Positions 3,084-58,160 of a DNA stretch of 64,000 nucleotides are shown here, piece after piece. The DNA is from Octopus sinensis. Taxonomy: Eukaryota. Positions within the stretch are counted from its first letter, which is position 1. Each line of letters starts with the position of its first letter. The translations under genes were made by a program, and so were the position numbers. The notes beneath the pieces are model-generated. The model saw nothing but the letters and a program-made list of their open reading frames with translations. It had not been told where the DNA came from and made no database searches. The stretch lies in contig NC_043000.1 of the NCBI RefSeq assembly GCF_006345805.1, positions 53,506,001-53,570,000 on the forward strand, read 5' to 3'.

Positions 3084-3114
<31 letters not shown>

Positions 3115-3894
3115 ATATATATATATATATATGTAGCAAGCATATTGTCTACCTGGCTATTCAGCTTGAATTATATCAAGTGGGTGTATTTTGGCATTGT
3201 CAATATTTGATCACGTGATCAGGGTTGGACTGAATCCATTGCAAAAACTGAATAGTCTAAACTAGCCAATTGGTGTTTGAGCAACAGTTTTTATCCCAGC
3301 ACAGAAAAATTTTCTTCTTGCCCACCACTCATTATATAAGGAATGCTCCCTCGCTTTAAAGAGCAGAGAGGAGATCACAAGCCAAGCAGACTTCTTGTTT
3401 ATTTTTCCTGTTGCTGATGCTGCAAAACCAAGCCATGAACATGCTGCAGAATTTCACCTATGACTCAACTTCCACTATTCCAGATATGGTTTGTTAAAAT
3501 TTACAAACCAGTTACTTCTCAATATGTAAGACATTTGTAATGTAACAGTTGCAATAAAGAACAGTCATATTGAATTTACCTGATTCTTCATGTCATTAGT
3601 TTATTTACGGTAACTCCAGGTACACAGACTAGACCACTTAGTGCTTAACCAAACACAGCTACATCAAGATGAATCAGCGTTCTGACTTCAACAACAGTAG
3701 TTATTAAAATATATGGCAAATGCCATACACACATATGAGTGTGTGTGTATATGTATGTATATATATTTATAATATTCTTCAGATATATTGACTCAAATAT
3801 ATATTTTTTAACCTTTTAAAACAAGCCTTCTGTAGTTTTTTCACTTTTTACTATTTTCTATATATATATATATATATATATACATATATATATA

Positions 3895-4288
3895 GGCGCA
3901 GGAGTGGTTGTGTGGTAAGTAGCTTGCTAATCAACCACATGGTTCCGGGTGCAGTCTCACTGTGTGGCATCTTGGGCAAGTGTCTTCTGCTATAGCCCTG
4001 GGCCAACCAATGCCTTGTGAGTGGATTTGGTAGACGGAAACTGAAAGAAGCCCGTCGTATATATGTATGTGTGTGCATGTGTTTGTGTGTCCATGTTTGT
4101 CTCCCTAGCATTGCTTGACAACCGATGATGGTGTGTTTGCATCCCCGTCACTTAGCGGTTCGGCAAAAGAGACCGATAGAATAAATACTTGGCTTAAAAA
4201 GAATAAGTCCCGGGGTCGATTTGCTCGACTAAAGGTGGTGCTCCAGCATGGTCGCAGTCAAATGACTGAAACAAGTAAAAGAGAGAGT
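3895..4288 (+). mobile_element. SINE family 1, full length
   Basis: GGCGCAGGAGTGGTTGTGTGGTAAG head with A-box-like and B-box-like (GGGTGCAGTCTC) motifs, central microsatellite, GAAACAAGTAAAAGAG tail. Confidence 0.9.
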
Positions 4289-4333
4289 ATATATATATAT
4301 ATATTTATATATATACATACATATATATTTACA

Positions 4334-4493
4334 ACATGCTTCTTTCAGTTTCCATTTTCCAAATACACTCACAAGATTTTAGTCAGCCAAGACTATAGTA
4401 GAAGAAAGTTGCTCAAGGTGCCACACAGTGGGACTGAACCCAGAACCATGTGGTTGGGAAGCAAGCTTCTTACCACACAGCCACGCCTATGCC
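4334..4493 (-). mobile_element. SINE family 1, 5' half
   Basis: Reverse complement of head through GAAAGAAGC, ending in a TA tract. Confidence 0.8.
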
Positions 4494-4499
4494 TATATA

Positions 4500-4930
4500 T
4501 ATAACACTCCAAAGAAGCTCCACCACTTTGCCCCCATGAGGCCCAGCACAATGATTTTCTTATTCTGTTTGATGATACTTGTCTCACTAATATGAGATAG
4601 CTGTATGTTGTTAGTTTTAAGAAATTTACCATTCTTTCTGTCACTTTAGTAGGTTCTAGTGACATGCATTACAAGATGACTAACTATTTTGACAGCAAAT
4701 TTTATGTCAAAGTATCTTTCTCCAAGAAGAGCTAATTCTCCATGGGTTTGTCAAAATTAATAGCAACATTGTCTAATTTGAGAAATCTGTTTACCCCTTT
4801 GATGGGTCCCTGACAGTTATGACAATTCACTTGGGAGTAATAATAATTAGGGGATGATTCCACACACCTTACAACTCTAGGAAACCTGAACTGGAACTGT
4901 ATCACTAAATGCAGTTTCATCTCATATTCA
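4500..4930 (-). pseudogene. Possible decayed CR1/L2-like LINE reverse transcriptase fragment (duplicated at 6360-6790)
   Basis: Minus-strand translations LDNVAINFDKP and MVNFLKLTTYSYLILVRQVSSNRI loosely resemble LINE RT motifs (D-F-x-K-A-F-D; W-I-x-N-F-L); weak. Confidence 0.3.
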
Positions 4931-5714
4931 GGACATTTTACATATATATAAATATATATATATATATATAATATATATATATATATATGTAGCAAGCATA
5001 TTGTCTACCTGGCTATTCAGCTTGAATTATATCAAGTGGGTGTATTTTGGCATTGTCAATATTTGATCACGTGATCAGGGTTGGACTGAATCCATTGCAA
5101 AAACTGAATAGTCTAAACTAGCCAATTGGTGTTTGAGCAACAGTTTTTATCCCAGCACAGAAAAATTTTCTTCTTGCCCACCAATCATTATATAAGGAAT
5201 GCTCCCTCGCTTTAAAGAGCAGAGAGGAGATCACAAGCCAAGCAGACTTCTTGTTTATTTTTCCTGTTGCTGATGCTGCAAAACCAAGCCATGAACATGC
5301 TGCAGAATTTCACCTATGACTCAACTTCCACTATTCCAGATATGGTTTGTTAAAATTTACAAACCAGTTACTTCTCAATATGTAAGACATTTGTAATGTA
5401 ACAGTTGCAATAAAGAACAGTCATATTGAATTTACCTGATTCTTCATGTCATTAGTTTATTTACGGTAACTCCAGGTACACAGACTAGACCACTTAGTGC
5501 TTAACCAAACACAGCTACATCAAGATGAATCAGCGTTCTGACTTCAACAACAGTAGTTATTAAAATATATGGCAAATGCCATACACACATATGAGTGTGT
5601 GTGTATATGTATGTATATATATTTATAATATTCTTCAGATATATTGACTCAAATATATATTTTTTAACCTTTTAAAACAAGCCTTCTGTAGTTTTTTCAC
5701 TTTTTACTATTTTC

Positions 5715-5746
<32 letters not shown>

Positions 5747-5754
5747 TATATAGG

Positions 5755-6148
5755 CGCAGGAGTGGTTGTGTGGTAAGTAGCTTGCTAATCAACCACATGG
5801 TTCCGGGTGCAGTCTCACTGTGTGGCATCTTGGGCAAGTGTCTTCTGCTATAGCCCTGGGCCAACCAATGCCTTGTGAGTGGATTTGGTAGACGGAAACT
5901 GAAAGAAGCCCGTCGTATATATGTATGTGTGTGCATGTGTTTGTGTGTCCATGTTTGTCTCCCTAGCATTGCTTGACAACCGATGATGGTGTGTTTGCAT
6001 CCCCGTCACTTAGCGGTTCGGCAAAAGAGACCGATAGAATAAATACTTGGCTTAAAAAGAATAAGTCCCGGGGTCGATTTGCTCGACTAAAGGTGGTGCT
6101 CCAGCATGGTCGCAGTCAAATGACTGAAACAAGTAAAAGAGAGAGTAT
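5755..6148 (+). mobile_element. SINE family 1, copy within duplicated unit
   Basis: Essentially identical to 3895-4288. Confidence 0.9.
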
Positions 6149-6193
6149 ATATATATATATATTTATATATATATACATACATATATATTTACA

Positions 6194-6353
6194 ACATGCT
6201 TCTTTCAGTTTCCATTTTCCAAATACACTCACAAGATTTTAGTCAGCCAAGACTATAGTAGAAGAAAGTTGCTCAAGGTGCCACACAGTGGGACTGAACC
6301 CAGAACCATGTGGTTGGGAAGCAAGCTTCTTACCACACAGCCACGCCTATGCC
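6194..6353 (-). mobile_element. SINE family 1, 5' half (duplicated copy)
   Basis: Identical to 4334-4493. Confidence 0.8.
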
Positions 6354-6801
6354 TATATATATAACACTCCAAAGAAGCTCCACCACTTTGCCCCCATGAG
6401 GCCCAGCACAATGATTTTCTTATTCTGTTTGATGATACTTGTCTCACTAATATGAGATAGCTGTATGTTGTTAGTTTTAAGAAATTTACCATTCTTTCTG
6501 TCACTTTAGTAGGTTCTAGTGACATGCATTACAAGATGACTAACTATTTTGACAGCAAATTTTATGTCAAAGTATCTTTCTCCAAGAAGAGCTAATTCTC
6601 CATGGGTTTGTCAAAATTAATAGCAACATTGTCTAATTTGAGAAATCTGTTTACCCCTTTGATGGGTCCCTGACAGTTATGACAATTCACTTGGGAGTAA
6701 TAATAATTAGGGGATGATTCCACACACCTTACAACTCTAGGAAACCTGAACTGGAACTGTATCACTAAATGCAGTTTCATCTCATATTCAGGACATTTTA
6801 C

Positions 6802-6842
<41 letters not shown>

Positions 6843-8760: not shown

Positions 8761-9094
8761 ATACATGAATACATACCTACACACACACACACACACGCTC
8801 TCTCACACACACACACACATGCTCTCTCTCACACATGCATCGGCTTAGCAGCGCGCATCGGCTTAGCAGCGCGCGCTCCGTTGCGGGTTCGTTTAAGTGA
8901 GAAGTGGAAGAAACGGAACCTCCTGCTTAGTGCGCGAGTAGACGGGGTTGCTGCGCCAGCATGCAGCACCCCTGTCGAACGTAACTTTCTGTACCGCCGA
9001 CGAGTCGTCGCTCGTCGGCGTCCGGCTCGGGCCCCGGTCTCGCGGAGCGACGTACAAACTCTGAGTGGAACACCGCGACTGCCTGTTGTCGAAG

Positions 9095-9300
9095 CGGCGC
9101 CTCGTGAACGGATCGAGGGCGAGGAGCGTGTCCCTATCTACTGTCTAGCGAATGCAGAGCCGAGGGTACGGGCTTGAAGAAGTTCTCGGTATCGAGCGCG
9201 GGTAAACGGCGGGAGTAACTTGGACTCTCTTCAGTGAACGGATCGAAGGCGACGAGGATATTGCCGCTGTCCCTATCTACTACTGTCTAGCGATAAGCAG
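9095..9300 (+). pseudogene. Rearranged 28S (LSU) rRNA domain IV fragments
   Basis: 9195-9220 AGCGCGGGTAAACGGCGGGAGTAACT equals the conserved eukaryotic LSU sequence as recalled, followed by GACTCTCTT; 9129-9176 matches TGTCCCTATCTACTATCTAGCGAAACCACAGCCAAGGGAACGGGCTTG with about 6 mismatches in 48; second copy at 9267-9293. Confidence 0.8.
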
Positions 9301-9496
9301 AGCTGAGTTACGACGAAGACCACGAGTGTGTGTGTCCGTGTGTTATCCACGCGCATCGAAGCGGCGATTTCACTTGAGAGAGTTCTCGGTCGAGTGCACG
9401 AGTCGAAAGAGTTATGCGGCCGGTCGATTGCCGGGGAGTAAGTCTGAGTTACGACGAAGACCACGAGTGTGTGTGTCCGTGTGTTATCGACGCGAG

Positions 9497-11578
9497 CGAC
9501 GCGGTCCGACCCGTAAGTCGAAGGAATCAGACCCGCATGCTTGCGGGTCGGCCCCGGCTGGATAGTCACGCTCTAGGTGACCGTCGCACCCCAAGGGGGT
9601 CAGGACTATATTGAGGGCTTGCAGTCGGCAGGTGGGTGTCTCCGGAACCGTTCGGAAGGATGCCAGAGACGTCAGCCTACGACGCCGTCAGGCCGGCGGG
9701 CGGCGGGAGGCCTGCGCCGGTCGCCCGTTGCTCCGCCGCCCTACCGTGCCCGAAATCGAAAGAACGAACCCAAGCTCGCGTCGTGGCCCACGTACGCGTG
9801 GACGCAGCCGCTAGCGATGCCGGAAGGCGTTCGCGAGATGCACGCGCTCGATACGGCGACGCGGTCCGTCCCGTAAAATCCTGAAAGATGACAAACTGCG
9901 GCTAGCGCGATGTAGCGGCAGGCCTGCGCAAGGCCTGCGCCGGTCGCCCGCGTCTCCGCCGCCGAACCGTGCGTGGAATCGAAAGCACGAAACTAAGCGG
10001 GCGGTGTCGGCCACGTACGCGTGGACCTAGCCGCGACCGATGTTGCGAGGTACGGGCGTTCGATACGGCGACGCGGTCCATCTCGTAAATTCCCGAAAGA
10101 TGACAAACTGCGGCCGCCTTCGCCCGCGCCTCCGCCGCGCTACCGCGAGGCTGAAGCGCGGCTCGAGCAAAGCTTGCGCTCTCGACAACGTACACGTGGA
10201 CGTAGGCGCGATCGATGCCGTCAGTCGCCGGGAGTGCGTGGCGATATGCACCGGGTAAAAACAGCGACGTGGTCCGACCCGTGAGTTAAGGAGGTGCTCG
10301 GACCGTAAGCAAACGGATCGGCCCCGGCTGGATAGTCACGCCTCTAGGTGACCGTCGCACCCCAAGGGGGTCAAGACTATGTTGAGGGCTTGCAGTCGGC
10401 AGGTTTATGCCTCGGGGACCGTTCGGCAGGATGCCAGAGACGTCAGCCTGCGACGCCGTCAGCCCGGCGGGTGGCCGCCGCCTTCGCGCCGCCTCGCTTT
10501 CTCCCGTTCGTCCACGAGCCGCGGGGCCGTTAGCGGCAGACCCGCGCCCGTCGCCCGTTCCTCCGCCGCGCTGCCGTGCCCGAAACCGAAAGAACGAACC
10601 CACGCTCACGGTACGGCCCACGGACGCGTGGACGTAGCCGCCACCGATGCCGGAAGGCGTTCACGAGATGCACGCCGTCGATACGGCGACGCGGTCCGTC
10701 CCGTAAAAACCCGAAAGATGGCAAACTGCGGCTAGCACGGTCGCCCGTTGCTCCGCCGCCCTAACGTGCCCGAAATCGAAAGAACGAACTTGAGCGTGCG
10801 GTCTCGCCCACGTACGCGTGGACGTAGCCGCGACCGATGTCGCGAGGTGCGGGCGTTCGATGCGGCGACGCGGCCCGTCCCGTAAATTCCCGAAAGATGA
10901 CAAACTGCGGCCAGTGCAGGCAACGGCCGATAGCGGCGACCATGCGCCCGCCTTCTACCGCCTTCGTCCGCAGTACCGCCGCGCTACCGCGAGGTTCAAG
11001 CGGGGCTTAAGCGAAACCTGCGCTCTCGCCCACGTACACGTGGACGTAGGCGCGATCGATGCCGTCAGTCTCCGGGAGTGCGTGGCGATATGCACCGGGC
11101 AAAAACAGCGACGTGGTCCGACCCGTGAGTTACGGAGGTGCTCGGACCGTAAGCAAACGGATCGGCCCCGGCTGGATAGTCACGCCTCTAGGTGACCGTC
11201 GCACCCCAAGGGGGTCAAGACTATACTGAGGGCTTACAGTCGGCAGGTGGATGTCTCCGGGACCGTTCGGCAGGATGCCAGAGACGTCAGCCTACGACGC
11301 CGTCAGCCCGGCGGGCGGCCGCCGCCTTCGCGCCGCCTCGCTTTCTCCCGTTCCTCCACGCCCCGCGGGGCCGTTAGCGGCAGGCCTGCGCCTGTCGCCC
11401 GTTGCTCTGCCGCGCTACTGTGCCCGAAATCGAAAGAACGAACCCGAGCTCGCGTCATGGCCCACGTACGCGTGGACGTAGCCGCCAGCGATGCCGGAAG
11501 GCATTCACGAGATGCACGTGCTCGATACGGCGACGCGGTCCGTCCCGTAAAATCCCGAAAGATGACAAACTGCGGCTA
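9497..11578 (+). repeat. Higher-order tandem array: ~770-845 bp units, each one conserved block plus three ~180-240 bp subrepeats
   Basis: TCGGCCCCGGCTGGATAGTC at 9548, 10318, 11162; CGACG(C/T)GG(T/C)CC at 9497, 9857, 10069, 10265, 10687, 10866, 11109, 11531; CGTAC(G/A)CGTGGAC-like motif in each subrepeat; third unit truncated. Confidence 0.95.
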
Positions 11579-12918
11579 TATGTGTGTGTGTGTAATTATT
11601 AGTGACAGAAGCAACATTATTAACAAAAGGCAATCCGACTTAATTTGGGTATATTGTTAGAGCACGGAATTCTGCAATATTTACCTTGAGAGGTCCTCTC
11701 ATACACATATTTATAGTACTGGCAGGTGAGAATTGATTGCTACAGGCGCTGACACTGCCAGTTCATGTGATTTCGATGTGCCCTGTCACCTCAGTAGAAG
11801 ACATCCTGTAGCTGCATACAGCCAAATCTGACTGCCAGTGATATATATTGCCTGAATTGAACAACCTTGTATTTAATATGAAACAAATAGCATTTCTTCA
11901 CTGAAACTTTGATTAGATTTCTATCTTCCCCAATTAAAATCAGGTATATAAGATATATATATGTATGTATATATGTAATAGTGTGTATGTGTGTGTATAT
12001 GTGCATGTGTGTATGTGTGTTTGTATGTGTGTGTGTGTGTGTATGTGTGTATGTGTGTGTCTGTGTGTGTGTGTATATATGGTGCAGTTTTATGCAAAGA
12101 TTTTGCTTATCAACTTTCACTCATTATACAGTAATCAACCTAAGGCCAATTTATAAGAAGACACTTCCCCAAAGTGACTGATGAGCAGAGCAATAAAACT
12201 TGGAAACATATGCTTGTGAAGTGAAACCTTTAAACTCACAGTGAGGTCCCTGAATATATACAAAATTTAATAAAAACTTCATGGTTTTAAAAGGTTGATG
12301 ATTTGAAACACTAATGAGCTAGCCGTATTTACATTACCGTATTTCCATAACTTTAGAGAAAAAGCTGATTTTAATCAATAATCAAGTGATTTTGTGTTAT
12401 CTTAAAATAATATGACATCTGAATCATATTCTATATCGATATCTCTTATAAAGAAGATTTTTAAATGAATTATAAAGACTAGTCTGATAAAATGTTGATT
12501 GACTTTCAATCGATTTGCTCCAAAAAATAAAAATAGTCATAAAGAAGGGGTAAAAAAAAAAAAAGAAAACATCTTTCAGACAGATCAAAAACTGATTATT
12601 GAGCTGAAAGCTTCTGCTGAAGTTACTACAAATACAAGTTAGATATGACTGGGGGAAATACTAGATTGCTATATTCAATATATTATGTAATTTTCTTTTA
12701 GATTCTCTGGTTAATTTCATATTTTCCTGGCTTTGATTTTTGCATTTCATTCTTTGAATATGTTTGGCAAGATACATACCAGTAATTTGCTGTTAAAATA
12801 AGATTAACATAACTTTCCACTTATAAATTTCACCTTATATATAGAGAGATAAAATTAAAGTTGACACAGATTCTAAAAGACTTCAGTTACATTTCACTGT
12901 ATTTCCTCATACCTCAAA

Positions 12919-13080
12919 GGCACAGGCATAGCTATATGGTTAGATGTTTGCTTTGCAGCCATATGGCTCCAAGTTCAATCTCATTGTGTGGAACCTTGGG
13001 CTGGTGTTTTTTTACTATAGCGCTAGTTTAACCAAAGACCTGCTAGTGGATTTGGTAGACAGAAACTGAAAGAAGCCTAT
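12919..13080 (+). mobile_element. SINE family 1, 5' half, diverged
   Basis: Head through GAAACTGAAAGAAGCC. Confidence 0.7.
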
Positions 13081-13094
13081 TATGCATGCGTATA

Positions 13095-27241: not shown

Positions 27242-27540
27242 ACATCATCATCATTCAACGTCCATTTTCCATGCTGGTATGGGTTGGACGGTTTGACTGA
27301 GGTCTGGAGAACCAGTGGCTGCACTAGGCTCCAATCTGATCTGGATGCCCTTCCTAATGCCAACCACTCCGAGAGTGTAGTGGGTGCTTTTTATGTGCCA
27401 CCAGCACAGGAGCCAGTCAGACGGGCCTGGCATCGATCACGTTCAGATAGTGCTTTTTATATGCCACCGGCATGGGTGTCCTGTTGCGGGGGAGGTACTG
27501 GCATTAATTCATGCTTTTTACGTGTCACCGGCACTTCATT
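27242..27540 (-). mobile_element. RTE-type LINE 3' end (truncated) with (GAT)n tail
   Basis: CATCATCAT...CGTCCATTTTCCATGCTGGTATGGGTTGGACGG matches the reverse complement of the 3' end of the RTE copy at 40440-41435. Confidence 0.8.
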
Positions 27541-27943: not shown

Positions 27944-28322
27944 TCTTTTATTCTTTTACTTGTTTCACTCATTTGACTGAGGTCATGCTGAAGCACTGCC
28001 TTTAGTCAAACAAATCAACCCCAGGTCATATTCTTTCTAAGCCTAGTACTTAGTCTATCGGTCTCTTTTGTTGAACCACTAAGCTACAGGGATGTAGACA
28101 CACCAACATCAGTTGTCAAGTGATGGTGGGGGGACAAACACAGACACACAAATACATATATATACATATATATACAATGGGCTTCTTTTAGTTTCTGTCT
28201 ACCAAATTTACACACAAGGCTTTGGTTGGCCCAAACAGAAGACACTTGACCAAAGTGCCACATAGTGGGACTGAACCCAGAACCATGTTGGGAAGCAAGC
28301 TTCTTACCACACAGCCACTCCT
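27944..28322 (-). mobile_element. SINE family 1, full length
   Basis: Similarity to other copies. Confidence 0.85.
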
Positions 28323-28329
28323 ATATATC

Positions 28330-29248
28330 ATCATCATCATCATCATCATTTAGCGTCCGCTTTCCATGCTAGCATGGGTTGGACGGTTCAACTGGGGTCT
28401 GTGAAGCCAGAAGGCTGCATCAAGCCCAGTCTTATCTGGCAGTGTTTCTACGGCTGGATGCCCTTCCTAACGCCAACCACTCCGTGAGTGTAGTGGGTGC
28501 TTTTTACGTGCCACCCGCACAGGTGCCAGGTGGAGCTGGCAAACGGCCATGGACGGATGGTGCTTTTTACGTGCCACTGGCACGAGGCCAGTCGGGGCGG
28601 CGCTGGCAACGGTCACGAACAGATGGTGGTACCAGATGAGTCTGGCAAATGGCCACGAACGGATGGTACTTTTGACATGCCACCGGCATGACGCCAGTCT
28701 GGGCGGCGCTGGCAACGGCCACTTTTGGATGGTTCTCTTACGTGTCACCGGCACTGGTAACTCAGCTGCAATTTCCATTGATCGATTTCGATTCTGATCC
28801 TCACTTGCCCCAACAGGTCTTCCCAAGTAGAGTTTTGTGTCCCAAGAAGGGAAGGTATGCATACGTGGGCTGGCTACATCCCATGTAGAAGGCCACGGGT
28901 TATGGTCTCACTTGTCCGGCCGGGTCTTCTCGTGCACAGCATACTTCCAGAGGTCTCGGTCTCTAGTCATTTCCTCAGTGAGACCTTTTGGATGGTTCTC
29001 TTACGTGCCACCGGCACTGGTAACTCAGCTGCAATTTCCATTGATCGATTTCGATTCTGATCCTCACTTGCCCCAACAGGTCTTCACAAGTAGAGTTTTG
29101 TGTCCCAAGAAGGGAAGGTATGCATACGTGGGCTGGCTACATCCCATGTAGAAGGCCACGGGTTATGGTCTCACTTGTCCTGCCGGGTCTTCTCGTGCAC
29201 AGCATACTTCCAGAGGTCTCGGTCTTTAGTCATTTCCTCAGTGAGACC
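28330..29248 (-). mobile_element. 5'-truncated RTE-type LINE with a 263 bp tandem duplication
   Basis: (GAT)n tail, 3' UTR minisatellite, ORF2 end (GLTEEMTRDRDLWKYAVHEKTR); 28722-28984 repeated at 28985-29247. Confidence 0.85.
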
Positions 29249-29999
29249 TTATATATATATATAATCTCATTGACCAACATTTCTGCTGAATTGCTGTACT
29301 TGAGAAGACACATCAAGTTTAGTGAAATTGTGTTTGTGCCCAGTGCCAGAGACATATGAAAAGCAATCATACTGGTGATACATAAAAGGCGAAAATATCA
29401 CATTTGAAGATGCTTTCTTTCTTTCTTGTTTACTGTTATTTTTGAGGCAAGACAAATATGTAGCAACATGGGTGAAAAAAAAAACGATTTAGGATACACC
29501 TAATATTGTATAAACATAGAAAAAAGAAAAAAACTGTTCAACTAACTGTTAAAAATGAGAAAAGAAAGTTATTTAAAGGTAGTTTCTTATTGAAATAGAA
29601 GAGATATTCCACTGAAAGGTTTTTCAACAGAAGCTGATTGCCATTCTCTGAATATGGTTGAAAGGAATGTCGCTTCAATAGCTACTCGATGCTGAAGTAT
29701 TATTTTCTTGTAAAAATGCAACAAATTCTTCTTAAAAATCTGATTAACCTGAAAATGTGGTGAAAAATAAATCCAAACAAGGAAGTTTGGTGACATACTC
29801 ATGCAAAGAAGATAAAATGAATGCTTGTAAAAAAGTGGAAGAACTACTGTTTAGATTAGTATATACATATATTAATATATATGTATACATATATGTGTGT
29901 GCATGTGTATGTACACACATATATATGCATACATACACACACACATACACACACACACACACATACACACACATACACACACATACACACACATATGTA

Positions 30000-30391: not shown

Positions 30392-31660
30392 TTAAGCCAT
30401 CCCATAAACAATGCGTTTTTTATACTTCTTTTATTTTTCAAAATTTAAGATAAACAATGTTCTTTTTTAATCTAAAATATATTCTCCATTATTTTCTACA
30501 ATGCTCTTCCATCTATCTCATAGACTTGCTAGGCTCCACTTCCAAATTTACTTGTCCGTGATGAAAAATACTACTCCACTACTGTTCTAACCTTGTCTAC
30601 AAAATGATTTTGAAGACTGCAGAATAAATGATAGTCAGCTGGGGCAATGTCCAGCGAATATGTGTGGAGCATCGTTTCCAATTCAAACAGCTCCAGCCTT
30701 TGGAATGTCATCCTCACTGTATGTGGCTGAGCATTATCCTGATGGAAGAACACCTTTCGCCTTGAAACCAAAGATGGTCGTTTTTCTTCTAACGTTGATT
30801 TAATCCACTCAAGCTGCTTGCAGTAGATCTCCTTTGTTAGCTTTTGGTGTGGGTTTAAAAGTTTAAAGTGGTCTAAACATTTCATATCCCCCTCACCACA
30901 AAACAGATAACAACATCTTACATGGGTGAAGATCTTCTTTAGCCTGGAGTGCCAGTGTTTCTCCTTTCCCTACCCACTGTCTTTGGCGCTTCATATTTTT
31001 ACAGAAAACCCAATTCTCATCACTAGTCACTATTTGGTCCAAAAAAGATGCTTTCATGAGACGTGACATCAAAGAACAGCACACATTCACACTCTGAATA
31101 CAATTAGACACAGAAAGTTTGCGAGGAACCCATTGACCCAATTTGCTGACTTTTCTGATGGCAAGCAGGTGTTGATGAATGGTTGAATGCTAAACTCCAA
31201 GTTTCTCTGCTAGTTCCTCAACAGTTATAATGACATTTTGTTCCACCAGGGCTTTCAGGATGCCCTTATTGAGCTCTACAGATCTTCCAAGAAGAGGCTC
31301 ATCTTCTAGGATGTAGTTTCTAGCTTGGAATTTCTGGAACCCCCATTGATAGTGACTTACGCTTATTGTCCGATCCCTATATACTGCATTAATATTCCTC
31401 ACACTTTCCATTGCATTGTTGCCTTCATTGAAATCATAAAGTAAAATATGTGGAATATGCTTCTTTGTCACTTCTGTTATAGCTTTGAAGAAAACAGCTG
31501 TTAAAATTGAACTGCACTCTTCAAAACTTGCACTAAGAATAAGTATGAGGTAAAATTTCTACCTGCTTTTATAGCAAGTTGATGCAGGTAATTTATCCCA
31601 TCCCCCTCTGACTTTTAGTTCATGAATAGAAAAATCTCCATTATTTATGGGATGACCCAA
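30392..31660 (-). mobile_element. Full-length decayed mariner (Hsmar1/Mos1-like transposase pseudogene)
   Basis: TIRs TTAAGCCATCCCATAAACAATG / CATTATTTATGGGATGACCCAA flanked by TA; ORF pieces with GQWVPRKL, IVTSDENWV, FFHQDNAQPH, YSLDIAPADYHLF. Confidence 0.92.
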
Positions 31661-34855: not shown

Positions 34856-37552
34856 GATTTCTTGCCTCCTATAATAATAGCGATAAAAATTTGATATGGG
34901 TGTACTAATTCATACAAATGCCTAAAAAGAAGCACTACTCAATGGGATACTATCAGAAAATATGATAATAATCCACTATAGAAAATTAGCCACATTAGTT
35001 GTAAAGCTTCCTTGCAAAACATGATGTGTGGGTCAGTTATAAAACACCATTCAGTGAAAGAGGTACTAAACCACAAATACAAAAACTACTAGTCTAAAGA
35101 GTCTAAAGTAAAATTATATTTCAACTTCATGAACCAGTTTAGCTAATGAAGAATTTAAGTTTCATAGCATGAAATAAAATGGGCATGACAAATAAAGTGG
35201 TTTATTCAAGGATACAATACAATAGTTTTCATTATATTTCATTCCTGAGCATTGAGTTCAATAACCAGTTGGTTTTGCATATCAAAGCTGTTATATGGCT
35301 TTTCATTTTTAATTCAAATTAACTTTCAAACATTACATCATTCGTGTTTAGAATCTAGTTTAAAACTATTCAGTTAAATCTCTCTATATCTGAGAAGTAG
35401 CTTCAATCTTGGCATATAATTAAACGCAACATAACTGCTATATTTTCTTCTTATCTTCATTTTATTATCTTGTTTTAAAACTCATCACATCTTTGGATGT
35501 AATGACGTACAGAAGATACCTACATAGAAGATACCTTTATAGAAAGCTCAACTTCTAAAGAATATCAGTGAAAGAATTGAACAAAAAAATAATAATAAGT
35601 CACAAATTATTTCTTCATTATCAATGAGTAGGTGGCATGAAATATTTTGATCTAATATGAATGCAATAAAAGTTTTCTGGTCATCATTTCATAATAAGAT
35701 TATCTATCTATTCACATAAGAAGGCTTTCAAAGCAGATATTATTTTTCAGAAATTACAGCACAAAATTATTTAAGAATCTGCAATGAATAGCAAGTTCTA
35801 ATAAGATCCAAAATGCCAAAATATATTAAAAGTTTTGCTTCAGGTTTACATTTACGAATGTTTGAAATACTCTATAACTGAAGATGTAATTTAATTTATG
35901 TGAGATAAGATAGATCTCTAAAAAGCTATTAACAAAGACTTCATGTTATTTGATCTTTTGATCCCAGCGCAGTTTAGCTATAAAGAAAAGTTTATAAACT
36001 GCAAAACATTTACAAACTACGGTATTTCTAAATTACAAGTTAGATATAATTCTTGAAAAAAAAAAATCTTTGAAATTTAGCAGTTGTTCTGAATATATTC
36101 TCAAATATATTAGAATGAAAAATTAGATAACATGATATCTATGTTTCCTTGCTCATTTAGGGGTAAAATTAATTCATAGAAAGCCCAAATTACCTGTTAT
36201 ATTTTAGAAATATGCAATTAATAATACCAACAAGATATATGCTGAAAACTGGTTATCAACAGGATAAACAACCTCAACTAATGCTAACATTGTGGATGGA
36301 TTTGATGGTTAACTTATTCATTGAATCTCTCTCTCTCTCTCTCAGGCAGAAGAGAGTAATAACATTGGGTTATTTAATCTCTGAAAATATAAAAACTATT
36401 TATATATTTGTTTTATAGGTCTATGTCTCTACCTCTCTCTCTTTCTTCTTATCTCTTTCCCCTCTCTCTCTTCCTATCTCTCTCCCCTTTCCCTCTCTGT
36501 TTGTATAAGCACATACGTACACATATGATTATTGTGTACATAGTAATAAACAAAATCTTTTATCAATATCCTTCTTTTGCCCAATTTCTATGGGTAAAAC
36601 CTAGAGATCAACCAGCCCTTAAGTTAGATTAACACCATAACATTCATGCTCACATAGGCATATTTGGAGAAATATTTTTCTCATTCATACATTACATATA
36701 TGTGTGTGTGTGTGTGTATTTATGCATGTATCTATGTGTATATATATGTATGTGTGTATATATATATATGTATGTATGCATTTATGTATGCATATATATA
36801 TATATACACACACACACATACACAAATATATATATACATATGATGATGATGATGTGCATGTAATTATATATATATATATGTATATATACACACATACAAA
36901 CATGCCTCTATGATTTTCTCTTTTACTTCCTTTCTTGTGGTGGGTAGGGCCATACAAATGGAGTGACTATAATCAAGTGACTTCCTAGCAATATATTACT
37001 GATGCTTGTATTATTGACCCTTGAGGGATGAAATTGAAATTGGTTCCTGTGAGATCTTTTACTCAGAAGCTTGAGTCATGTGTATCACTGATGTAGACAC
37101 TTCAAACATTTTAATCACTGCAGATTTCACTGCATTATTGTCATATATAAATATTGCATGTTGGATATGAACTGCTTTCCAAATACATTCATTTATGTTT
37201 TCTTTATTTTCTTCCTGCAGTTGAGAGGCAATAATTGTAAATGCCAACTTGTTATTGCATTTGAGGTTACAGCTATTATTGTTGTTGTTTAAATTCAGAT
37301 TATCCCTTTTCAAACTGATTTATAATCAAAGATGATCCTACTGTAACCCTCACTTCCTTTTTCAGACTTAGTGTGCCCAGGAATATAATATCTAATATGG
37401 ATTTCCCTTTTTAAGAAAGAGTTTGATTTGACTTGATTTGAAAGGGATTTGACTGCTATGTCTAGAAGTTTAGTGATTTACACTTGGCTTTAGAAACCTC
37501 TAGCAGAGCCCACTTTGCTATGATCATTCTGGTCATATCTCCAATCAGGAGA

Positions 37553-37990
37553 TACTTGTACTTGTACTTGTGATGGCATTCACCCAGGACGGTTGAGCTG
37601 GCTTCTTCTCTGTTTCTAACAGCATCATGAACCATGGCGGCCCACACTCGATGGTCCTGTGCGAGATCACTGGAGATAGCAAGCCATTCACGGTTCCAAC
37701 TGCGCAGACCAACTATGCGTGGACCTGAGAGTTCAGAGAAGTTCTCATTTATCGTTGTTGTGCAGGTCTTCAGCTGCCTGCCCGCACCTTTGTGCCAGCT
37801 GGGAAGTGGAGGTGGGAGGAGGACATCGCGAATCAGCTTACTCTCTGGACACCGGGCCGCATGACCAAACCACCTTATGTGCCGTTGTAGAAGCACTGAA
37901 GGGCAGGGCCAGAGATTCAAGTGACGACGAAGACTGGCTGTAGTTTTAGAAGCCCTGAAACAGATTATGGGCAGTGTTCTTTGTCCTCTC
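37553..37990 (-). mobile_element. RTE-clade LINE 3' fragment with (CAAGTA)n tail
   Basis: ORF 37462-37992 contains LLQRHIRWFGHAAR...RQLKT...LAQDHRVWAAMV, typical of an RTE ORF2 C-terminus. Confidence 0.85.
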
Positions 37991-38074
37991 ATGAAGTTGT
38001 TATAAAATATGTAAAGAGCAGATATTTTAAGGTTACATTTAGTTTGAAAATAATTGAAGAATTTTATACTTGGT

Positions 38075-40439: not shown

Positions 40440-41435
40440 GTGTCAAAGGGCCTCTCACTCAGAGTAAAAGGTAGACTATATGACACATGTGTGCAAATAG
40501 CTATATGGCAGTGAAACATGGGCCGTGATTGCCGAGGAAATTCATAAGCTTGCAAGAAATGAAGCTAGTATGCTCTGCTGGATGTGTAATATCAGTATGC
40601 ATGTACGACAGAGTGTAAGCACCCTGAGAGAAAAGTTGGACCTAAGAAGCATCAGATGTGGTGTGCAAGAGAGACAGCTGTGCTGGTTTGGTCATGTGTT
40701 GCATATGGATGATGACAGCTGTGAGAAAAAGTGTCACCCGAGAAGTAGAGGGAACCTGTAGAAGAGGTAGGCTCAGGAAGACTTGGGATGAGGTGGTGAA
40801 GCATGAATTTCAAATGTTGGGCCTCTTGGAGGCAATGACGAATGACCAAGATCTTTGGAGATACACTGTGCTTGAGAAGACCCAGTAGGCCAAGTGAGAC
40901 CATAACCAGGACCTATGCCAGTGCAGCATAACTGGCCCATTTAAGAGTACCCTTTAATCATTGGGCAATAAACTGTGCCTGCAAAGATCTATTGAATCAA
41001 GTGAAGTTGCAAGTACCATCTGACTGGCACCTGAACTGGTGGCATGTAGAAAGTACTATTTGAGCATGGTCGATGCCAATGCTGCCTGACTGGTCCCATG
41101 CTGGTGGCACGTAAGAAGCACCATTCAAGCATGGTCATTGCCAGTCCCAGCTGAGTGGCTCTGATGCTGGTGGTATGTAAAAAGCACCATTCAAGCATGG
41201 TCGATGCCATTACTGCCTGACTGGCCTTCATGCCAGTGGCACATAAAAATCACCCACTACACTCTCAAAGTGGTTGGTGTTAGGAAGGGCATCCAGCTGT
41301 AGAAACACTGCCAGATCAGACTGGAACCTGGTACAGCCTTCTAGCTTGCCAGTCCTCAGTCAAACTGTCCAACCTATGCCAGCATGGAAAGCAGATGTTA
41401 AACAACAATGATGATGATAATGATGATGATGATAA
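40440..41435 (+). mobile_element. RTE-clade LINE 3' part (ORF2 C-terminus, 3' UTR, (GAT)n tail)
   Basis: YGSETWA...RNEASMLCWMCN...WFGHVLHMDDD...GRLRKTWDEVVK...DLWRYTVLEKTQ across frameshifts. Confidence 0.92.
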
Positions 41436-49505: not shown

Positions 49506-50504
49506 ATAAAAACATTAAAACCATTTTTAATTATCATGAATCTAGAACTACATTATGCAAATTCGCCTTCAGTTATGAAAACAACTAAGTGAAATTTGGC
49601 TGCTATTTTTAATAATTTAAATGTTCACACAGAATACACAGGAGCAATTTTTTTAGCTTGCATGTGCATGATGCTGAAGGTTCTATGCTGAAAACATTCA
49701 GTTCTCTGTAATACTAGTTTTGTTACAATATGCAATCAAGTAGACACATAGAATGTTAAAGTTTTGTGCTTTGCTTTTGATATTAGAATATATCAATTCT
49801 CAAGCTGTAAAATATTATATTCCATAATTTTTAAATACCTAATACTGCAAAAAAAAAAGAAAAAAAAGTTATTTTCAACTTCAATTAATGTTTGAACTCA
49901 GAATGTTTGCTGCCTGGTTTTTTAGATCTCGTGATATAAAATCTGTGGCGATATTTATTTTAGAAGATATTAAAATGGCAGTTTTATACTGAAATTAATG
50001 TGCCACGTAAAGTAAATTAAATGCTATCAAAGACAATCTTATATTATATATACAGTTAATCTGTAGTTCCTTTAGTTTCTTAGTGATGTGTTAATATAAC
50101 CTCAGTTTAAACATTCGACATACAAAGCAATATTTGTCAGAATCAAAAGACTTAATGTAACATAGCTGATTTGAAAGTGGAAATAAAATGTTCATGGTAT
50201 TCTAGCTGAATTAAAACTTCAATATCTCCAAACAGATGTGGTTGAAAGGTTTTTAGGACAGAACTTTTCCTCTGAAGTCAGGCTGTCATCAACTTCTTCA
50301 ATAATCAGTAGAAGAGGAGGAAAGTTAGAATAGCGAGTAAATTATATGAAAGATTAGTAAGAGTCATGAAATTGGTTTGGTTAAATGGGTCTAGTCAAAC
50401 TATACAACAACAACTGAGAAAAGGCTCTATCATTATATTTACCATACAATAATAAAAGTAACTAAACCTATTAAACTATTGCTTTCATTAAAGAAGGCTT
50501 TTTC

Positions 50505-51010
50505 ATCATTCATCATCATCATCATCATCATCATTTAGCGTCCGTTTTCCATGCTAGCATGGGTTGGACGGTTCAACTGGGGTCTGGGGAGCCCGAAGGC
50601 TGCACCAGGCCAGTCAGATCTGGCAGTGTTTCTACAGCTGGATGCCCTTCCTAACGCCAACCACTCCGAGAGTGTAGTGGGTGATTTTATGTGCCACCGA
50701 CACAGGTGCCAGACGAGGCTGGCGAACGGCCACGCTCGGATGGTGTTTTTATGTGCCACCGACACAGGTGCCAGACGAGGCTGGCAGACGGCCACGCTCG
50801 GATGGTGTTTTTATGTGCCACTGACACAGGTGCCAGATGAGGCTGGCGGGCGGCCACGATCGGATGGTGTTTGTTACGTCCCCAAAGCACGGAGGCCAGT
50901 CTATGCGGTACTGGCTATGGCCACGTTCGGATGATTTTCTTGTGTGCCACCGGCACTGGTACCAGAAAGATACAAATTCCATTGATGTTCATCTATTTTG
51001 ATTTGTTTTG
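50505..51010 (-). mobile_element. RTE-type LINE 3' UTR with three 62 bp tandem repeats
   Basis: (CAT)n tail; TTTATGTGCCAC units at 50686, 50748, 50810. Confidence 0.85.
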
Positions 51011-57752: not shown

Positions 57753-57789
57753 ATATATATATATATATACATACATACATATATACATA

Positions 57790-58160
57790 CATGGTTCCAG
57801 GTTCAGTCCCACTGTGTGGCACCTTGGGCAAGTGTCTTCTACTATAACCTTGGGCCAACCAAAGTCTTGCGATTGGATTTGGTAGACAGAAACTGAAAGA
57901 AGTCTATCATATATATCTGTGTGGTGTGTGTGTGTGTGTGTGTGTGTGTTTGTGTGTGTCTGTTTGTCCCCGCACCATTGCTTGACAATCAATGTTGGTG
58001 CGTTTATATCCCTGTAAATTAGCTGTTTGGCAAAAAAGATCGATAGAATAAGTACTAAGCTTACAAAGAACAAGTTCTGGAGTTGATTTGTTCAACTAAA
58101 GGCAGTGCTCCAGTATGGCCACATTCAAATGACTGAAAAAAATGAAAGAGTAAAAGAATA
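57790..58160 (+). mobile_element. SINE family 1, head truncated at a TA tract
   Basis: Similarity to other copies. Confidence 0.85.

Follow-up and report, generated by a model that had tools for sequence, protein, structure and literature searches.

How does a block of DNA built like a ribosomal DNA (rDNA) spacer come to lie by itself in AT-rich DNA full of transposon remnants? The question is raised by an island at positions 8837-11578 (2742 bp) of a 64-kb stretch of the Octopus sinensis genome (assembly GCF_006345805.1, contig NC_043000.1, positions 53,506,001 to 53,570,000, forward strand), which we call the window and to which all coordinates refer. The reading that we favour, and consider somewhat probable, is that the island is a solitary fragment of rDNA-spacer type, end-joined into a break in a microsatellite, and either recently arrived or unmethylated in the germline.

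An initial annotation, made from the letters of the window, had singled out this block as the richest in GC and CpG, and the composition agrees. The island has a GC fraction of 0.643, a CpG observed/expected ratio (o/e) of 1.40 and 397 CpG, against 0.346, 0.31 and 572 CpG in the remaining 61 kb. Outside the island, 500-bp windows with a GC fraction above 0.5 reach a CpG o/e of at most 0.74. The island is present as a single copy within the 64 kb.

28S-derived sequence ahead of the repeats

The 28S-like fragments that the initial annotation had placed ahead of the repeats proved to be genuine. The Rfam model LSU_rRNA_eukarya aligned on the plus strand at 9080-9282 (model positions 2211-2354, 15 bits, E 0.21) and at 9098-9177 (model positions 2310-2388, 13.7 bits, E 0.13). 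The 28S consensus 39-mer GCGCGGGTAAACGGCGGGAGTAACTATGACTCTCTTAAG occurs at 9196-9234 with 3 mismatches (36/39, 92%) and the 24-mer TGTCCCTAYCTACKATCTAGCGAA at 9129-9152 with 1 mismatch. Despite the weak Rfam scores, these core matches are unambiguous; neither pattern turned up in 100 shuffles. The sequence at 9098-9282 is genuine 28S that has decayed.

The 28S pieces form a minisatellite at 9098-9302 (plus strand), delimited by the Rfam alignments, the pattern matches and a repeat spacing of 130, with units of ~130 bp that start at 9104 and 9234. Each unit carries 28S model positions 2310-2388, the R1-site region (beginning TGTCCCTATCTAC), followed by positions ~2232-2272, the upstream half of the R2 target, which means that the 28S order is permuted as well as tandemly duplicated. 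Across the unit boundary, ~32-37 nt of 28S are missing between CTCTTCAG and TGAACGG. A third, more decayed continuation of the array occupies 9303-9494 (plus strand). At each of its ends lies one copy of a 51-bp direct repeat (9303-9353 and 9444-9494, 98% identical), which includes a short (TG)n run (9326-9335 and 9467-9476). All of this 28S-derived sequence lies in cis, upstream of the higher-order repeats and in the same orientation, the order from 28S to spacer that a spacer has.

Rfam searches of 8830-9105 and 9285-9500 returned no rRNA-like sequence, and those of the whole window gave no match at gathering thresholds and no further rRNA pieces at E<=1. The window also has 124 Rfam 'miRNA' matches below threshold, to mir-297, mir-466, mir-3149 and others; every one of them coincides with a (TA)n/(CA)n microsatellite and is noise.

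The retained 28S stretch includes the sites at which R2 and R1 insert, and its upstream half corresponds to an R2 substrate oligonucleotide, the bottom strand of which is nicked between AAGG and TAGCC (PMC13000458). Within 9196-9240, 28S colinearity ends where CTCTTCAG meets TGAACGG, a few nucleotides from that nick site (PMC13000458). This breakpoint may reflect R2 activity in the donor rDNA, or it may be a coincidence.

Nested higher-order repeats

Downstream of the 28S-derived part, 9495-11578 is made up of 2.5 higher-order units whose copies are spaced by 770/771 and 844 bp, in agreement with the periods of 770 and 844 bp first described. The 24-nt motif GGCGACGCGGTCCGNCCCGTAAA recurs at eight sites and delimits the subrepeats, which measure 360, 212 and 196 bp in the first unit, 422, 179 and 243 bp in the second, and 422 and 50 bp (cut) in the third. 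Alignment showed three homologous subrepeat types, a, b and c, in fixed order, with a common core in which GTCGCCCG, CTCCGCCGC, CCGTGCCCGAAATCGAAAGAACGAAC and CCCACGTACGCGTGGACGTAGCCGC follow one another at intervals. All units lie on the plus strand. Unit 1 (9495-10262, 768 bp) consists of a1 (9495-9854), b1 (9855-10066) and c1 (10067-10262), and unit 2 (10263-11106, 844 bp) of a2 (10263-10684), b2 (10685-10863) and c2 (10864-11106). Unit 3 is cut off (11107-11578), comprising a3 (11107-11528) and only 50 bp from the start of b3 (11529-11578). Unit 2 is 87% identical to unit 1 and 93% identical to unit 3. At the break in b3, the expected continuation is CTGCGGCTAGC, and the actual reading is CTGCGGCTA followed directly by TATGTG.

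Subrepeats of type a alone have a conserved block of ~200-270 bp in place of ~30 bp after the motif; the first ~20 nt of the block are also present in the plain subrepeats. Its best-conserved part lies at 10288-10475 (plus strand), with other copies at ~9520-9704 and ~11132-11319 (91-95% identical). The block includes ACTATATTGAGGG (9605-9617 in copy 1), which we take to be a candidate initiator-like motif for RNA polymerase I (Pol I), given its resemblance to the Pol I initiator regions of other eukaryotes. The initial annotation had seen each unit as a conserved block plus three subrepeats of ~180-240 bp; the nesting stands, and the make-up is revised to three homologous subrepeats with the block inside the a-type. 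Nested tandem subrepeats with a recurring, predicted promoter-like block are characteristic of spacer-derived sequence. A satellite would form a long homogeneous array of many monomers, and the island instead has eight subrepeats in units that are 87-93% identical. Taken together, the 28S-derived sequence and the repeat architecture support the rDNA-spacer character of the island well.

Octopus relatives of the subrepeats

Are the repeats native to octopuses? A HMMER search with the island open reading frame (ORF) at 10794-11192 (plus strand) against 1.84 billion representatives gave one match, in five stretches (cluster P0002, E 2.4e-7). The matching protein is XP_029656242.1, a 'serine/arginine repetitive matrix protein 1-like' model of Octopus sinensis on a 27,596-bp contig, and the cluster also contains two O. 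vulgaris models, CAI9742837.1 (on a 29.19-Mb record) and CAJ1099424.1 (on a 78-kb contig). The three models (P0002-P0004) are translations of a 77-aa (231-bp) tandem unit with two subtypes in alternation; all begin and end with the same residues, and they contain 4.5, 8.5 and 2.5 units. When the three proteins were searched against the window with tblastn, they hit the island only, at 9697-10176, 10591-10898 and 11365-11581, with 52-58% amino acid identity across whole units and E-values down to 7e-16. In the island, the reading frame of the Octopus models is interrupted by stop codons. The edge units of the Octopus arrays (SRYRLRTRGRTRDRCRK at one end, RRGPSRK at the other) are nearer to the island units (SRYGPRTRGRSRHRCRK, RRGPSRK) than the homogenised inner units are, a likeness that fits because array edges are expected to escape homogenisation.

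Since the subrepeats are homologous to the 231-bp Octopus arrays, the family is, by sequence comparison, a repeat of the octopod lineage and not a contaminant. Contamination and horizontal transfer were both rejected as origins, the homologues being found in Octopus only and the 28S pieces being of eukaryotic type. Homologous arrays with a variable number of subrepeats in a related species are what a spacer origin leads one to expect. The combination of constant ends, variable unit number and a location on small unplaced contigs in two of three cases would fit the way that (collapsed) rDNA spacers appear in assemblies. The 'SRRM1-like' and hypothetical proteins of Octopus are probably annotation artefacts.

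These relatives also bear on an alternative that we regard as unlikely: a tandem-repeat or satellite family of octopods, or the internal repeats of an uncharacterised transposon, that never resided in an rDNA spacer and took up its 28S-like pieces in an old capture. One of the O. vulgaris arrays does lie on a 29-Mb record of chromosome scale, the 28S pieces are decayed and internal, and a search of the protein collections yielded no high-copy, near-identical sequence. Such a family would nevertheless have to account for 28S-derived sequence directly ahead of the array in the expected orientation, and for an extreme GC content and CpG excess without decay, which would be unusual for a dispersed repeat where other repeats are CpG-depleted. 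It also sits poorly with the lack of transposable-element termini or ORFs, and with there being just three annotated homologues, two of them on small unplaced contigs.

Edges of the island

Both edges of the island lie at microsatellites, in the arrangement that the initial annotation had reported, (CA)n on the left and an oppositely oriented (TG)n on the right. The left flank is a composite (CA)n/(CT)n microsatellite of 57 bp (8779-8835; Tandem Repeats Finder: period 24 x2.3 plus (AC)20), the terminal CACACAT of which adjoins the island. The right flank is a short TA(TG)6 at 11579-11593, with (TG)6 at 11581-11592. These two microsatellites are the sole end-to-end inverted repeat of the island. 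Positions within 15 bp of a (CA/TG) run of at least five make up only 3.3% of the window, so it is unlikely by chance that both edges abut such runs (~0.001, if the edges are independent). At the left junction, 8837-8872 (plus strand) is an exact tandem duplication of the 18-bp sequence GCATCGGCTTAGCAGCGC (100% identity), as first noted, which may be a footprint of repair synthesis. Between the duplication and the 28S-derived part, 8873-9097 (plus strand) is GC-rich and free of repeats, and it matched no RNA or protein family.

Two kilobases left of the island there is a direct tandem duplication of 1.9 kb (3084-4977 and 4942-6836, 99.6% identical, with its junction in (TA)n), which is either very recent or a local assembly problem.

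The improbable coincidence of both edges with (CA)n/(TG)n tracts is also an argument for an assembly artefact, in which reads from an rDNA spacer were falsely joined, or served to fill a gap, between two microsatellites and the island is absent from the locus. The short (TG)n runs inside the spacer-like sequence itself also speak for this reading, and the nearby 1.9-kb duplication could signal local assembly problems. The island contains no Ns, however, and the right-hand (TG)n is, at ~13 bp, too short to mislead an assembler through overlap. Two independent false joins within 2.7 kb would be needed, and both the truncation of the last repeat unit and the duplication of 18 bp at the junction resemble products of repair. 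We therefore judge an artefact to be quite unlikely.

Coding capacity and mobility

Each of the six frames of the island has ORFs of 80-150 aa, which is expected at a GC content of 64%, and a Pfam search with eight of these ORFs gave no family match. A protein-coding reading was rejected on these grounds and on the stop codons in the Octopus frame. Could the island still be a functional element of its host locus, either a CpG-island promoter or a real arginine/serine-rich protein gene of the kind annotated in Octopus? We consider this most improbable. The undepleted CpG would suit a promoter, but a CpG o/e of 1.4 in tandem repeats is atypical of CpG-island promoters. NCBI and ENA do annotate the Octopus homologues as proteins; the 'protein' is, however, purely the translation of a 231-bp DNA repeat and is broken by stops in the island, where the ORFs searched have no Pfam family and ORFs in every frame are expected from the base composition.

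The initial annotation had also entertained a new mobile unit, an option that found no support. At the island ends, we found no terminal inverted repeats (TIRs) other than the flanking microsatellites, no target-site duplication (TSD) and no poly(A) or A-rich tail. The 5'-TC...CTRR-3' ends of Helitrons are also lacking, as the right end reads CTAT rather than CTRR. Helitron, TIR and retroposon ends were thus rejected on the sequence of the island edges. The island has neither the termini, TSD or tail of a transposable element nor coding capacity with a family match, nor, as a single copy in the window, multiple dispersed copies.

Surrounding DNA and CpG decay

The DNA around the island is AT-rich, strongly CpG-depleted and full of microsatellites. 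Both flanks consist of DNA unrelated to the repeat family (a mariner relic, short interspersed nuclear elements (SINEs) and microsatellites), which is the setting of an orphon, a solitary, dispersed member of a tandem family.

Other repeats in the window allow the state of the island CpGs to be judged. A GC-rich dispersed repeat (GC 0.50-0.56), present at 27243-27470, 28327-29250, 41085-41432 and 50503-50966, has a CpG o/e of 0.5-0.74 and clear CpG decay. It opens with (ATC)n and TTTAGCGTCC and has internal tandem repeats of ~62 bp; the copy at 28.3 kb contains a 266-bp tandem duplication (28722-28987 and 28985-29250, 98.5%). We used this repeat as an internal control. In two of its copies (89% identical, CpG o/e 0.64), CpG positions differ 3.9 times as often as other positions, whereas in the island units they differ 1.0-1.6 times as often, and the unit-specific changes are mostly other than CpG transitions. 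CpG decay therefore acts on other GC-rich repeats of the window and has left nearly no mark on the island. This agrees, as an either/or, with the proposal that the retained CpGs point to recent arrival or to protection from methylation: either the island arrived very recently, in which case its units already differed by 7-13% in the donor array, or it is kept free of methylation in the germline.

A decayed mariner-type transposase relic on the minus strand runs from 8603 to ~7900 and abuts the left microsatellite (weak HTH_48 match, E 0.021); a search for its terminal repeats, which asked whether the island could sit inside it, gave microsatellite matches only. A second decayed mariner-type relic lies at 30571-31471 (minus strand). 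A SINE of ~300 bp is present in at least 15 copies that are 75-82% identical (e.g., 12948-13081, 28000-28323 and 57789-58101), with a core that includes CACCTTGGGCAAGTGTCTTCTACTATA and GGATTTGGTAGACAGAAACTGAAAGAAG; we take it to resemble an octopus SINE. At 37462-37992 (minus strand), a 176-aa ORF is like the C-terminal tail of ORF2 of a non-long-terminal-repeat retrotransposon. It shares 60% identity with an ORF of Logan contig SRR8281668_169648 that has an RVT_1 ORF upstream of it. Two window ORFs, looked up by exact match in public assemblies, returned no record.

Origin of the island

How, then, did the island come to its present site? In a native array, by analogy with metazoan spacers, duplicated spacer promoters and enhancer or terminator subrepeats would serve Pol I. 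A free fragment of such a spacer, which is not mobile by itself, most likely became filler DNA in a double-strand break at the microsatellite tract, with the break sealed by end joining. We favour end-joining capture as the most economical account because it explains the arbitrary cut through b3 and the lack of a target duplication, and because repair synthesis would account for the 18 bp duplicated at the left edge. Fragments of rDNA are documented donors of double-strand break insertions in yeast (PMC11724301), and repeats derived from the rDNA intergenic spacer (IGS) have been described outside nucleolus organiser regions (NORs) in tomato (PMC2679016) and characiform fishes (PMC13170303). 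The rDNA linkage of the parent family, the mode of insertion and any Pol I function are what we infer from the structure of the locus.

Several observations weigh against this origin. The Rfam scores of the 28S pieces (15 and 13.7 bits) are far under the gathering threshold of 50 bits, and the pieces are internal to the gene, rearranged and decayed. No 28S 3' end, external transcribed spacer (ETS) or 18S is attached to the island. The Octopus homologues are only ~55% identical in translation, and their linkage to rDNA is deduced rather than observed, a point that also favours a family without rDNA residence. No near-identical parent copy was found in the collections searched. Protein-word searches with the island ORFs at 10379-10732 (plus strand) and 10289-10660 (minus strand), which are in frames other than that of the Octopus models, gave no homologues, and scans of JGI metagenomes with exact 22-mer and 21-mer patterns from the island gave 0 matches. 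The position of both junctions at microsatellites is also compatible with an assembly error.

The proposal of an rDNA-spacer orphon in the initial annotation thus stands in part. Genuine 28S sequence, a nested array, a solitary site and homologues in Octopus all agree with it; the island is not a plain, contiguous cut-out of a 28S end and its spacer because the 28S pieces come from inside the gene and not from its 3' end. Beyond the capture of a spacer fragment, two more far-reaching readings can be framed, and we regard them as improbable: that the island is a germline-unmethylated Pol I promoter/enhancer module outside the nucleolus organiser, with a role in nucleolus tethering or NOR seeding, or that the 28S minisatellite is a by-product or decoy of R2-type retrotransposition in cephalopod rDNA.

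Dispersed fragments of rDNA spacers were already known as a class; the locus changes no principle, and its value is local. A literature search on cephalopod or octopus rDNA spacers, and on 28S fragments inside spacers, found nothing relevant, and the island offers, to our knowledge, a first look at a spacer-type module of a cephalopod. It also exposes an annotation error, the translation of a 231-bp DNA repeat as 'SRRM1-like' or hypothetical proteins in two Octopus annotations. As a CpG-saturated island in CpG-depleted DNA, it is a natural probe of how fast, and whether, new DNA is methylated in the octopus germline, and, if polymorphic, it would be a dated marker of a specific break-repair insertion. 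Its weight would rise only if the island were a Pol I module that is active or protected, or the breakpoint at the R2 site a product of retrotransposon activity.

Comparison with known systems

The 28S stretch retained in the island is exactly the target region of the rDNA elements R2, R1 and Pokey. Unlike these elements, the island has no reverse transcriptase, endonuclease or transposase ORF and no element termini, and there is no element sequence between its two 28S halves.

Its ends recall the capture of filler DNA, such as the rDNA inserts of yeast (PMC11724301) and insertions of the nuclear mitochondrial DNA (NUMT) type: there is no TSD, the donor repeat is cut at arbitrary points, one junction carries a short duplication, and the break site lies in microsatellite DNA. 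At 2.7 kb, however, the island is larger than most documented inserts, and the event is read from the junctions alone.

Like rDNA orphons and IGS-derived repeats, among them the IGS-derived satellite of tomato (PMC2679016) and the As51 satellite linked to 45S rDNA in characiform fishes (PMC13170303), the island has spacer-type subrepeats at a non-rDNA site. Unlike the IGS-derived satellites, it comprises 2.5 units (eight subrepeats) with no amplification within the window, and its source array is putative.

The closest relatives are the arrays behind XP_029656242.1, CAI9742837.1 and CAJ1099424.1, the 77-aa (231-bp) units of which align end to end with the island subrepeats. Those arrays are homogenised alternations of two units with no a-type block inside the annotated ORF, whereas the island has three subrepeat types and stops in that frame. 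The divergence would suit another octopod species or a paralogue of greater age.

In metazoan rDNA spacers, duplicated spacer promoters are combined with enhancer subrepeats, as in Xenopus (60/81-bp repeats with spacer promoters), Drosophila (240-bp repeats) and Daphnia (A, B and C repeats). Ribosomal intergenic spacers have also been described as filled with transposon remnants (PMC10319768). Unlike these spacers, the island lies alone in AT-rich, transposon-filled DNA with no 28S 3' end, ETS or 18S attached, and its 28S pieces come from mid-gene and form a small tandem array of their own. Like them, it is GC-rich, non-coding and built of nested tandem repeats, with a conserved block once per higher-order unit and with 28S-derived sequence upstream in the same orientation.

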